A stretch of DNA of 63,059 nucleotides, counting the filler, from Dicyema japonicum (taxonomy: Eukaryota; Animalia; Dicyemida), in assembly GCA_011109175.1 (NCBI GenBank). It is 5 parts of 5 records of this genome, joined end to end, with 100 filler letters (N's around TTAATTAATTAA, not from the genome) between each part and the next. Parts side by side here need not be neighbours in the genome. Positions count along the whole stretch, not along the records: positions 56,429 to 57,942 come from RDEW01000137.1; 4 more parts are not named here. One strand, written 5' to 3'. How positions within the stretch are numbered: the stretch's first letter is position 1; each line of letters opens with the position of its first letter. The notes under the pieces are model-generated. The model made no database searches, was not told the DNA's origin, and was given only the letters and a program-made list of their open reading frames with translations. Below are positions 56,429 to 57,942 of this stretch, piece after piece. Made by a program: the position numbers and the translations under genes.

Positions 56429-57942
56429 TGAGTGTTAAGCTATGCACGTTTGAATCAAAGGTCTTTGGTTCGAATAAAGAAGTGGCCACTTTTGAGTTGG
56501 GATTAATGTATTGAGCTGAAAAAAGAAAAGCCCCGATGGTTGAGTGCTAAGGTATGCACGTTTGAAAAAAAGGTCATGGGATCGAATCCAGAAGAGGCCA
56601 CTCTTGAGTTGGGATTATTTTATAGAGTTGAGAAAAGAAAAGCCCCGATGGCTGAGTGCTAATCTATGCACGTTTGAACCAAAGGTCCTGGGTTCGAATC
56701 CAGAAGAGGCCACTTTGAGTTGGGATTAATGTATAGAGTTGAAAAAAGAAAAGCCTCGATGGCTGAGTGCTGAGCTATGCTCGTTTGAACGAAAAGTCCT
56801 GGGTTCGAATCCAGAAGAGGCCACTTTTGAGTTGGGACTAATGTATAGAGTTGATAAAAAAGCCCGGATGGCTGAGTGCTAAACTATGCACTTTTGAATC
56901 AAAGGTCCTGGGTTCGAATACAGAAGAGGCCACTTTTGAGTTGGGATTAATGTATAGAGTTGAAAAGCCCCGATGGCTGAGTGCTAAGCTATGCACGTTT
57001 GAACCAAAGGTCCTGGGTTCGAATCCAGAAGAGGCCACTTTGAGTTGGGATTAATGTATAGAGTTGAAAAAAGAAAAGCCCAGATGGCTGAGTGCTAAGC
57101 TATGCACGTTTGAATCAAAGGTCCTGGGTTCGAATCCAGAAGAGGCCACTTTGAGTTGGGATTAATGTATAGAGTTGAAAAAAGAAAAGCCTCGAGGGCT
57201 GGGTCCTATTCTATGCACTTTTGAATCAAAGGTCCTGGGTTCGAATACAGAAGAGACCATTTTTAAGTTTGGATTAATGTATAGAGTTGATAAAAAAGCC
57301 CGTGTGGCTGAGTGTTAAACTATGCACTTTTGAATCAAAGGTCCTGGGTTCGAATACAGAAGAGGCCACTTTTGAGTTGGGATTAATGTATAAAGTTGAA
57401 AAGCCCCGATGGCTGAGTGCTAAGCTATGCACGTTTGAACCAAAGGTCCTGGGTTCGAATACAGAAGAGGCCACTTTTAAGTTGGGATTAATGTATAGAG
57501 TTGATAAAAAAGCCCGTGTGGCTGAGTGTTAAACTATGCACTTTTGAATCAAAGGTCCTCGGTTCGAATAAAGAAGAGGCCACTTTTGAGTTGGGATTAA
57601 TGTATAGAGTTGAAAAAAGAAAAGCCCCGATGGCTGAGTGCTTAGCTATGCACGTTTGAACCAAAGGTCCTGGGTTCGAATCCAGAAGAGGCCACTTTGA
57701 GTTGGGATTAATGTATAGAGTTGAAAAAAGAAAAGCCCCGATGGCTGAGTGCTAAGCTATGCACTTTTGAACCAAAGGTCCTCGGTTCGAATACAGAAGA
57801 GGCCACTTTTGAGTTGGGATTAATGTATAGAGTTGAAAAAAGAAAAGCCCGGATGGCTGAGTGCTAAGCTATGCACGTTTGAACCAAAGGTCATGGGTTC
57901 GAATCCAGAAGAGGCCACTTTTGAGTTGGGATCAATGTATAG
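56429..57942 (+). repeat. Tandem array of ~14 tRNA-derived units (105-112 bp)
   Basis: Unit GCCCCGATGGCTGAGTGCTAAGCTATGCACGTTTGAACCAAAGGTCCTGGGTTCGAATCCAGAAGAGGCCAC-TTT(T)-GAGTTGGGATTAATGTATAGAGTTGAAAAAAGAAAA; starts at 56530, 56642, 56753, 56862, 56967, 57078, 57189, 57298, 57403, 57512, 57624, 57735, 57847. Confidence 0.9.

Follow-up and report, generated by a model that had tools for sequence, protein, structure and literature searches.

tRNA-related tandem repeats in animals

Tandem repeats of the kind described here are already known from amphibians and reptiles: newt, Xenopus, Rana and Hydromantes have tandem families related to tRNA, and squamates have satellites derived from SINEs (reviewed in PMC10702118). 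In the newt Cynops pyrrhogaster, the PolIII/TAN (Hirt) family (Nagahashi, Endoh, Suzuki and Okada 1991), whose ~360-nt unit has been assigned to tRNA-Glu and is transcribed in vitro, is regarded as the descendant of a single tRNA-derived copy (PMC10702118). In Xenopus, the tandem repeat OAX / satellite I is abundant, and Pol III transcribes a tRNA-derived segment in the middle of its unit (Ackerman 1983; Lam and Carroll 1983; PMC10702118). Frogs and plethodontid salamanders have the tandem families Rana/polIII (~250-nt unit) and Hy/polIII (~200-nt unit, without box B) (Bucci et al. 1999; Batistoni et al. 1995; PMC10702118). Squamate sSat arrays (Vassetzky et al. 2023) consist of portions of known SINEs, usually together with a longer, SINE-like terminal unit (PMC10702118).

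The array analyzed here fills positions 56,429 to 57,942 (record RDEW01000137.1) of a 63,059-nt window, the whole stretch of Dicyema japonicum DNA under analysis, in which five parts of five records of assembly GCA_011109175.1 are joined end to end. As in newt PolIII/TAN, Pol III promoter elements lie in a tRNA-related part of a tandem unit; by description, the array differs from that family in a unit of ~110 nt instead of ~360 nt and in TTT at the anticodon position instead of an assignment to tRNA-Glu. The presence of a tRNA-derived segment within a tandem repeat is likewise shared with OAX / satellite I, whose unit measures roughly 740–750 bp; there, however, only a small part of the unit is tRNA-like, whereas two thirds are tRNA relic here. 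Short tandem units, tRNA similarity (weak in those families) and Pol III-type boxes recall Rana/polIII and Hy/polIII, relative to which the tRNA resemblance is stronger (consensus B box, acceptor relic) and the unit about half as long. With squamate sSat arrays the locus has in common a tRNA-related Pol III element, imperfect homogenization and alternating or dimeric unit patterns, but here a complete tRNA-like cassette, T-run included, makes up the unit. Functional tRNA genes form tandem arrays as well, for example in Entamoeba histolytica and in the Tyr/Ser cluster on Arabidopsis chromosome 1, with units of 0.5–1.8 kb. Head-to-tail tRNA gene units, short spacers and duplication at the DNA level are the features in common with these arrays, unlike which every copy fails tRNA detection here and the unit is only ~110 bp long.

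A single tandem array spans the piece entirely (TRF: period 112, 13.8 copies, 88% matches, with a second period of 436 bp, 3.4 copies, 90% matches) and is truncated by the piece edges on both sides (56429 and 57942). Its ~14 head-to-tail copies range from 105 to 112 bp, the spacings from B box to B box being, in order, 112, 112, 111, 109, 105, 111, 111, 109, 105, 109, 112, 111 and 112. Within this piece, head-to-tail non-coding copies with 88–90% matches and subfamilies of 96–99% identity agree with satellite DNA, which consists of long arrays of a non-coding unit evolving in concert; as to coding potential, the longest ORFs start with TTG or GTG, do not exceed 81 aa and gave no Pfam family above cut-off. 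The initial annotation had described a homogenized tandem array of tRNA-shaped Pol III-type cassettes (A box, B box, T-run), which is borne out by the unit alignments. It had also pointed to recurring 109/105 length pairs as a sign of higher-order duplication, and these pairs are real:

56429..57942, + strand: whole tandem array, 13.8 units of 105–112 bp, defined by TRF, B-box spacing and unit alignment; the tRNA-like sense is the + strand
56753..56966, + strand: first 109+105-bp pair (u03+u04), a TAAAAAA-tailed unit followed by a type-2 head with a short AAAA tail
57189..57402, + strand: second 109+105-bp pair (u07+u08), 436 bp downstream of u03+u04

Some duplication is thus evident, u04 and u08 being 98% identical, but u03 and u07 merely 81%. 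A regular four-unit higher-order repeat is only weakly supported, since mean unit identity at lag 4 (0.90) barely exceeds that at other lags (0.87–0.895).

Unit architecture and Pol III promoter-like elements

Each unit comprises, in this order, a 72-nt tRNA-like head, a T3–T5 run, a 25-nt conserved spacer and an A-rich tail. The layout is given below for the reference unit, together with the second clean cassette of the array:

56753..56861, + strand: u03 (109 bp), reference unit and best cassette in structural terms, with good A and consensus B boxes, a T4 terminator and no T4 inside
56753..56824, + strand: tRNA-like head of u03, 72 nt, from GCCTCGA to GAGGCCAC, with a relic acceptor stem GCCTC/GAGGC of 5 bp
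56760..56770, + strand: A-box-like element TGGCTGAGTGC of u03, agreeing with TRGCNNAGTGG at 10 of 11 positions, tRNA positions 8–18
56782..56788, + strand: anticodon-loop relic CGTTTGA of u03 (CTTTTGA in five other units), flanking stem unpaired
56802..56812, + strand: B-box element GGTTCGAATCC of u03, agreeing with GGTTCGANNCC at 11 of 11 positions
56825..56828, + strand: T4 run of u03, 3 nt past the end of the relic acceptor, in the position of a Pol III terminator
56829..56853, + strand: spacer core of u03, 25 nt, GAGTTGGGA(T/C)TAATGTATAGAGTTG, among the least variable unit parts (pi 0.057)
56854..56861, + strand: A-rich tail of u03, ATAAAAAA (AAAAAAGAAAA or AAAA in other units), equivalent to the 5' flank of the next head
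57847..57942, + strand: u13, cut off by the piece end, combining good A and consensus B boxes with T4 and no internal T4

Landmarks of tRNA genes had been proposed to stand at their proper spacing, and in the unit alignments they do so almost throughout, with T8 (U8 of the RNA) in 12/13 units, G10 in 13/13, A14 in 13/14 and G15 in 14/14, followed by the B box; G19, on the other hand, is absent from the A box of every unit. The B box has the general form GGTTCGAAT(C/A)C and appears as GGTTCGAATCC in six units, as variants ending in ATAC or ATAA in seven and as GGATCGAATCC in one. Mutated boxes (8/14) carry C61 -> A in seven units and T54 -> A in u01; save for the latter, the TTCGA core is invariant, and the CpG of TTCGAA is kept in all 14 units. 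The A and B boxes lie 30–60 bp apart as in type-2 Pol III promoters (42 nt from start to start), and the T-run starts 13 nt past the end of the B box, with GGCCAC standing between the two. Exact agreement with TGGCNNAGTG-N(25-40)-GGTTCGANNCC was found in six units versus 0 in shuffles, the remaining eight differing at one to three positions within a single box; the perfect B box is kept in six units and the same A box in nine. Counted from the B box in the 5' direction, the anticodon position holds TTT (Lys) in 14/14 units, and the Y-U-NNN-R-N-like loop C(T/G)TTTGA sits at the correct distance. The initial annotation had likened the segment to tRNA-Arg; the 5' half presumably resembles eukaryotic tRNA-Lys(UUU), and the 3' half tRNA-Arg(UCU).

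Downstream of the head, the 3' flank bears GAGTTGGGATTAATG, and the spacer GAGTTGGGATTAATGTATAGAGTTG recurs in 13 units at ≤2 mismatches compared with 0 expected. The A-rich tail of 4–11 nt is the source of nearly all unit-length variation, which falls wholly within homopolymer runs.

The T-run after the head is T4 in eight units, T5 in one (u07), T3 in four (u02, u05, u06 and u11) and TCTT in one. Five units contain an additional T4 within the anticodon-loop relic (CTTTTGA), which would act as an internal Pol III stop. A good A box, a consensus B box, a clean T4 terminator and freedom from internal T4 are combined in u03 and u13 only (2/14). T4 or T5 goes with a damaged B box in seven of nine units and with the consensus box in the other two (u03, u13), and T3 is confined to near-identical type-1 units that also carry the consensus B box. 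The distribution of T3 and T4 is therefore best read as subfamily descent. The idea that T3 and T4 variants switch between monomer and read-through transcripts finds no footing in this pattern, which follows subfamily and pairs T3 with the best B boxes.

Loss of the tRNA fold and variation among units

ARAGORN reported 0 functional tRNA genes in 56429-57942, and the Rfam tRNA model (RF00005) gave no match at E<=10, either with the whole piece or with the best unit, u03, alone. The inability to fold as tRNA, suspected at the outset, is thereby confirmed, including by the covariance-model check; a functional tRNA or tmRNA is ruled out by both programs, and the stems fall short of the paired anticodon stem with 7-nt loop, the 7-bp acceptor stem and the 5-bp T stem of a functional tRNA gene. 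Lowering the ARAGORN threshold to 80% yielded tRNA-Ala(tgc) calls with an implausible anticodon arm, which are artefacts of that threshold, while the acceptor and T arms drawn in these calls match those of our hand-set cloverleaf. Across 4227 Rfam families on both strands, no match at E<=10 was obtained beyond one spurious miRNA, and none to a ribozyme family, hammerheads included, such as those carried by self-cleaving satellites of newt, schistosome and cricket; the miRNA match, to mir-434 (17 bits versus a gathering score of 100, E=6.3), arises from the inverted repeat GTTTGAACC/GGTTCGAAT. We also discarded a stable alternative RNA fold: MFE z-scores range non-significantly from -1.5 to +0.6 across units, nearly every unit folds differently, and the RNAalifold consensus of the units contains no compensatory changes or covariation. 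Only u03 has a cloverleaf-looking MFE structure, still without a match to the tRNA model at the same E-value limit.

The hand-set cloverleaf nevertheless fits in register, with 60.5% of cells paired versus 16–44% when it is slid by 1–3 columns. Its anticodon stem is broken (38% of cells paired), as the initial annotation had stated. The acceptor stem (56%) had been called shifted or broken, and shifted it is not: pairs 1-72, 2-71, 3-70 and 5-68 are kept in the normal register, and 4-69 in two units with T4. The T stem, likewise described as shifted or broken, retains 4 bp once a 1-nt deletion is allowed for, with an 8-nt loop. Defects common to all units are the loss of 2 nt from the anticodon arm, of 1 nt from the T stem and of G19, and unpaired 6-67 and 7-66. 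Since no covariance model recognizes the head as tRNA-like, the case for tRNA descent rests on the boxes, their spacing and the partial stems.

Two main types of unit can be distinguished, exemplified by:

56642..56752, + strand: u02, type 1 (u02, u05, u06, u11; 98–99% identical), with consensus B box, CGTTTGA, T3 and a long tail
57298..57402, + strand: u08, type 2 (u04, u08, u10; 96–98% identical), with internal T4 in CTTTTGA, C61 -> A and a T4 run

These subfamilies (96–99% identity) are interleaved, with u09 and u12 as hybrids, and the four-gamete test fails for three pairs of sites. Tail variants go with the type of the head that follows, TAAAAAA always standing 5' of a type-2 head. Nucleotide diversity is 0.086 in the boxes, 0.108 in the rest of the head and 0.057 in the spacer, with no significant difference in a comparison that has low power, being made among 14 non-independent, mutually homogenizing copies of one array, and that is compatible with array-level selection. 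Equal substitution rates in boxes and spacer had been named beforehand as an observation that would speak against function. Within this one array and its 14 non-independent copies, the data lean in that direction; the six perfect B boxes, the A box common to nine units and the CpG kept in all 14 would also fit some maintenance of TFIIIC binding.

As to relatives elsewhere, an exact 26-mer of the spacer and an exact 28-mer of the head found no match among the scanned metagenome and prokaryote contigs, which are non-eukaryotic collections, and the 26-mer none in viral contigs. Comparison of the head with phage genomes (blastn) gave chance matches of 21–23 nt only and no tRNA genes. Strings of the unit sequence had no match in full-text papers, nor had phrases for tRNA-derived satellites in a literature phrase search.

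Origin of the array and alternative readings

We consider the array to be probably a decaying satellite derived from a tRNA gene or a SINE, amplified by exchange at the DNA level and evolving as a neutral repeat. The ~110-bp monomer would have arisen either from one tRNA gene together with its short flanks or from a tRNA-derived SINE of very small size. That the T-run follows the head immediately favors a gene as founder; the A-rich stretch ahead of every head fits a SINE founder too. In view of the defects shared by all units, the founding copy would already have been devoid of tRNA function. Multiplication may have proceeded by unequal crossing-over, replication slippage and gene conversion, which would have left behind two subfamilies in interleaved order, their mosaics and a two-unit block present in duplicate. 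From then on, the array would drift as neutral repetitive DNA, its promoter boxes decaying as fast as the spacer. Some units may incidentally bind Pol III or TFIIIC or yield a short Pol III transcript, as a by-product that would not be what keeps the array in place. If this ordinary reading holds, the locus is a further example of a satellite seeded by a tRNA gene or an element derived from a tRNA, and it informs the question of how satellites are born.

Selection on the array as a Pol III/TFIIIC element, be it a chromatin-organizing B-box platform or a short tRNA-shaped RNA with a new role, appears unlikely. The initial annotation had envisaged a ~75-nt RNA or a TFIIIC platform; maintenance of the array for either purpose sits badly with boxes that vary like the spacer, with eight of 14 B boxes mutated and with two clean cassettes among the 14. 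If selection were nonetheless at work, the interleaved T3 and T4 subfamilies would imply monomeric and read-through products, and the ~110-bp unit would make this the most compact tRNA-cassette satellite among the examples found. The more specific proposal of an active multi-copy Pol III gene family, giving rise to a functional ~75-nt tRNA-like ncRNA or, at T3, to longer read-through RNAs, can point to a cassette lacking none of its main elements (A and B boxes at normal spacing, T-run) and to the six perfect B boxes left. The transcripts would be comparable to those of newt PolIII/TAN or Xenopus OAX / satellite I, and for related tandem families of amphibians transcription has been seen in vitro or in oocytes (PMC10702118). 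We regard this proposal, too, as unlikely: the fold is neither conserved nor unusually stable and lacks covariation, conservation of the boxes does not exceed that of the spacer, clean cassettes are few, the units with the best B boxes end in T3, and transcription of five units would stop at the internal T4 after ~34 nt. TFIIIC can be recruited by B boxes alone. By analogy with ETC sites, or with the B boxes clustered where heterochromatin ends in fission yeast, the array might serve at the DNA level as a dense TFIIIC platform (boundary or nuclear tether) with little transcription, in line with 14 B-box-like sites per 1.5 kb, six of them exact to GGTTCGANNCC, and with the near-invariant TTCGA core and its CpG in all units. 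Such a role would be very unlikely, however, as C61 -> A in seven units and T54 -> A in one affect strongly conserved B-box positions, and as the B box is kept no better than the neighboring spacer.

The variable A-rich tail, which ends each unit directly before the next head, invites a further explanation, namely that full-length copies of a very short 'simple' SINE, made up of tRNA-like head, short body and A-rich tail, were stacked head to tail by repeated insertion or multimer duplication, in place of a duplicated tRNA gene locus; SINE multimers and SINE-derived satellites are documented (PMC10702118). We judge this quite unlikely, given that a mobile SINE could not afford T4 right after the head, where Pol III would halt without transcribing body and tail, that target-site duplications between the units are lacking, and that the tail variant goes with the type of the following head, as expected of a 5' flank carried along by DNA duplication. 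A purely coincidental tRNA resemblance of an ordinary satellite without tRNA ancestry would agree with the failure of Rfam and ARAGORN to find a tRNA match at normal thresholds and with the lack of blastn similarity to annotated phage tRNA genes, but is scarcely credible considering that the joint chance of an A box, a B box and T4 at these spacings is ~7e-8 per random 112-mer of the same composition, i.e., per monomer, and that relic acceptor, D and T stems lie in register.

For the annotation of tRNAs and SINEs, a decaying satellite of this type would carry a warning, as box-based scans will flag every unit. Should some of the units be bound by TFIIIC or transcribed, the array would offer a compact natural test bed for the effects of Pol III promoter arrays on chromatin. 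As a side observation, AluI, HaeIII and TTCGAA sites recur across the units, which makes the array a ready species-specific marker.

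Array layout and unit anatomy

The observation of a tandem array of tRNA cassettes was confirmed: positions 56429–57942 (1514 bp) form one array from end to end, for which Tandem Repeats Finder, run on the whole piece, gave a period of 112 bp (88% matches, 2% indels) with 13.8 copies, these being the copies inside a piece whose edges cut the array on both sides. A second period of 436 bp (3.4 copies at 90%) was found as well. With the B-box motif as anchor, the units measure, in order, 112, 112, 111, 109, 105, 111, 111, 109, 105, 109, 112, 111 and 112 bp; the 109/105 pairs recorded in the initial annotation correspond to u03+u04 and u07+u08, 436 bp apart (units are numbered u00 to u13 along the array). 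For alignment, the array was divided into units that each start with the tRNA-like segment, the outermost ones, u00 and u13, being truncated by the edges of the piece. Column identity averages 93%, and the array has a G+C content of 43% with a strong strand asymmetry (G>C).

Segments of the repeat unit (columns and consensus of the unit alignment)
Columns 1–72: tRNA-like head, GCCCCGATGGCTGAGTGC...GGTTCGAAT(C/A)CAGAAGAGGCCAC
Columns 73–76: T-run
Columns 77–101: conserved spacer GAGTTGGGATTAATGTATAGAGTTG, 13 units with ≤2 mismatches versus 0 expected
Last part of unit: A-rich tail in three forms, AAAAAAGAAAA, ATAAAAAA and AAAA

Essentially all variation in unit length lies in the A-rich tail and the T-run. 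ORFs are short (≤81 aa, with TTG or GTG starts), and none of them matched a Pfam family above cut-off. Units of the array (56429–57942) carry restriction sites at AGCT (D-arm relic), GGCC (in GGCCAC) and TTCGAA (B box), and digestion would give a ladder of ~110 bp.

The tRNA landmarks described earlier do stand at proper spacing: T8, G10, A14 and G15 are kept in all or all-but-one units, the A-box region (TGGCTGAGTGC) agrees with 10/11 consensus positions (TRGCNNAGTGG), and the B box (GGTTCGAATCC) agrees with 11/11 positions of GGTTCGANNCC in six units, while G19 is absent from all units. An A box followed after 25–40 nt by a consensus B box occurs six times versus 0 in 100 shuffles, and the calculated chance that a random 112-mer of the same composition has an A box (≤1 mismatch), an exact B box and T4, spaced as observed, is ~7e-8; the cassette layout is therefore real, and a chance resemblance to tRNA is highly improbable. 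Since the copies are homogenised, the layout counts as a single ancestral event rather than as 14. If the variable loop has its normal 5 nt (AGGTC), counting back from G53 of the B box puts the anticodon position at alignment columns 32–34, where the triplet is TTT (Lys) in 14/14 units, within a loop C(T/G)TTTGA. The 5' half of the head may resemble eukaryotic tRNA-Lys(UUU), and the 3' half (AATCAAAGGT...GGGTTCGAATCC in the initial annotation) may resemble tRNA-Arg(UCU).

Relic of the cloverleaf

That the units no longer fold as tRNA, as had been proposed, is borne out by several approaches. ARAGORN at its normal threshold detected no tRNA gene in the whole piece, and in the covariance-model comparison (cmscan, all 4227 Rfam families) neither the piece nor the best unit, u03, alone gave a tRNA match at E≤10. 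MFE folds of eight heads had z-scores of -1.5 to +0.6 and structures that vary between units, a cloverleaf-like drawing being obtained from u03 only. Six 'tRNA-Ala(tgc)' models emerged only at 80% of the ARAGORN thresholds and were rejected for their implausible anticodon arm; their acceptor and T arms agree with our hand-set register.

When a cloverleaf was placed by hand on the alignment, 60.5% of cells were paired versus 16–44% with the 3' partners slid by 1–3 columns, so that a relic is still in register. The D stem (3 bp) and the T stem (4 bp) each have 81% of cells paired, the latter once a 1-nt deletion, which makes its loop 8 nt long, is allowed for. For the acceptor stem the value is 56%, with pairs 1-72, 2-71, 3-70 and 5-68 kept and 4-69 present only where position 4 is T, in two units. 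The anticodon stem, correctly described as unpaired, reaches 38%, and its arm is 2 nt short relative to canonical numbering in all units. Of the further claim of shifted or broken acceptor and T stems, the shift does not hold for the acceptor, whose surviving pairs keep the normal register. Compensatory changes were found nowhere in the unit alignment. The inactivating lesions are common to the units and are therefore older than the amplification; descent of the cassette from a tRNA is supported by the box layout together with the in-register relic.

An inverted repeat of 8–9 bp, at 56672–56698 and in the same columns (31–39 with 50–58) of u05, u06 and u11, joins the anticodon-loop relic GTTTGAACC to the T-loop/B-box GGTTCGAAT. 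It dominates the predicted folds of these type-1 units, and any cloverleaf would have to compete with it; whether column 38 holds C or T, its pairing is preserved (C-G or U-G). The sole Rfam match, mir-434 (17 bits versus a gathering score of 100), is a spurious product of this repeat.

Subfamilies and state of the cassettes

Two subfamilies are interleaved along the array, type 1 (u02, u05, u06, u11; 98–99% identity) and type 2 (u04, u08, u10; 96–98%), alongside hybrid (u09, u12) and diverged (u01, u07) units. All four combinations occur at three pairs of informative sites, as expected from inter-unit exchange or conversion, or from recurrent mutation. The suggested higher-order duplication stands in part: the 436-bp pattern amounts to a duplicated block with some local order, but not to a regular higher-order repeat, with u03 and u07 sharing just 81% identity and a mean identity at lag 4, 0.90, that is hardly above the values for other lags (0.87–0.895). 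The tail ATAAAAAA always directly precedes a type-2 head (u03>u04, u07>u08, u09>u10), and tail and next head thus travel together; the 'tail' therefore behaves like a 5' flank belonging to the head after it, moved by DNA-level duplication, and the natural duplication boundary may lie inside the spacer rather than at the head start. These junctions, with heads GCCCGG/GCCCGT..., A22 and an internal T4, are at 56854–56866, 57290–57302 and 57504–57516. The most diverged unit, u07 (57189–57297; 79–91% identity to the others), has three A-box changes, a T5 run and GACCAT for GGCCAC, although its neighbours on either side are near-identical type-1 and type-2 units; it is either an old copy escaping homogenisation or a local mutation cluster.

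State of the cassette elements, by unit
Consensus B box: u02, u03, u05, u06, u11, u13
C61 -> A: u04, u07, u08, u09, u12
C61 and C62 both -> A: u00, u10
T54 -> A: u01
A box broken: u01, u07
Downstream T-run T4: 8 units
Downstream T-run T5: u07
Downstream T-run T3: u02, u05, u06, u11
Downstream T-run TCTT: u01
Internal T4 (CTTTTGA) in anticodon-loop relic: u04, u07, u08, u10, u12

The internal T4 would be a potential Pol III stop after ~34 nt. T3 is confined to the near-identical type-1 units, which also have the best B box, and the nine T4/T5 units have a damaged B box in seven cases and a consensus box in two (u03, u13); the T3/T4 difference is therefore a mark of subfamily, with no sign of a designed switch. 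Nucleotide diversity within the array (A box, 0.087; B box, 0.086; remainder of the head, 0.108; spacer core, 0.057) shows no significant difference between these parts (14 copies, one array). That the boxes are no better conserved than the spacer, an outcome that the initial annotation counted towards refutation, leans against maintained function, in a comparison of little power because the 14 copies homogenise one another. All 14 units (56429–57942) retain the CpG of the B-box core TTCGAA, and that near the 5' end (CCCCGATGG) is altered in 6/13, with an overall CpG observed/expected of 0.60; coming from one homogenised unit, this pattern is no evidence either way on methylation or selection.

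Origin and possible activity

Judged from the sequence, the favoured origin would be duplication of a tRNA gene together with the sequence directly beside it: the T-run closely follows the relic acceptor on its 3' side, in the very place of a tRNA-gene terminator, and the flank upstream of the head is A-rich. A simple SINE of very small size, with head, short body and A tail, that became multimeric would also fit, but Pol III would be halted by a T4 right behind the head before it reached body and tail, and each tail variant goes with the head that comes next. We therefore favour the gene with its flanks, and a SINE multimer as a distinct reading appears rather unlikely. The initial annotation had further envisaged an ncRNA source, a TFIIIC platform and a T3/T4 switch, none of which is favoured by how the units have decayed within this array. 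Only u03 and u13 unite a good A box and a consensus B box with a T4 terminator and no internal T4; an active Pol III RNA family would seem unlikely, and a TFIIIC platform would be quite improbable. We consider it probable that the array evolves neutrally, as a satellite that came from a tRNA gene or a SINE and has no more than incidental Pol III/TFIIIC activity.

Exact-word scans with a spacer 26-mer and a degenerate head 28-mer gave no match in metagenome or prokaryotic genome collections, nor did the spacer 26-mer in a viral collection, and blastn of one head against phage genomes returned chance matches only; this silence says little, since none of these is a eukaryotic genome set. Functional tRNA-gene arrays occur in Entamoeba and Arabidopsis, through the mechanism proposed here for D. 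japonicum, acting there on live genes. Tandem families with a tRNA-related Pol III segment have already been described, among them the newt PolIII/TAN (Hirt) family (~360 nt, tRNA-Glu-derived, transcribed in vitro), Xenopus OAX/satellite I, Rana/polIII (~250 nt) and Hy/polIII (~200 nt), and SINE-derived satellites, imperfectly homogenised and often subtelomeric, are found in 56 squamate genomes (Vassetzky et al. 2023, PMC10702118). The D. japonicum array shares with these families a tRNA-type cassette multiplied in tandem, but it is without a known parent SINE, its unit is much shorter (~110 bp), and two thirds of that unit consists of the complete tRNA relic plus its own T-run.
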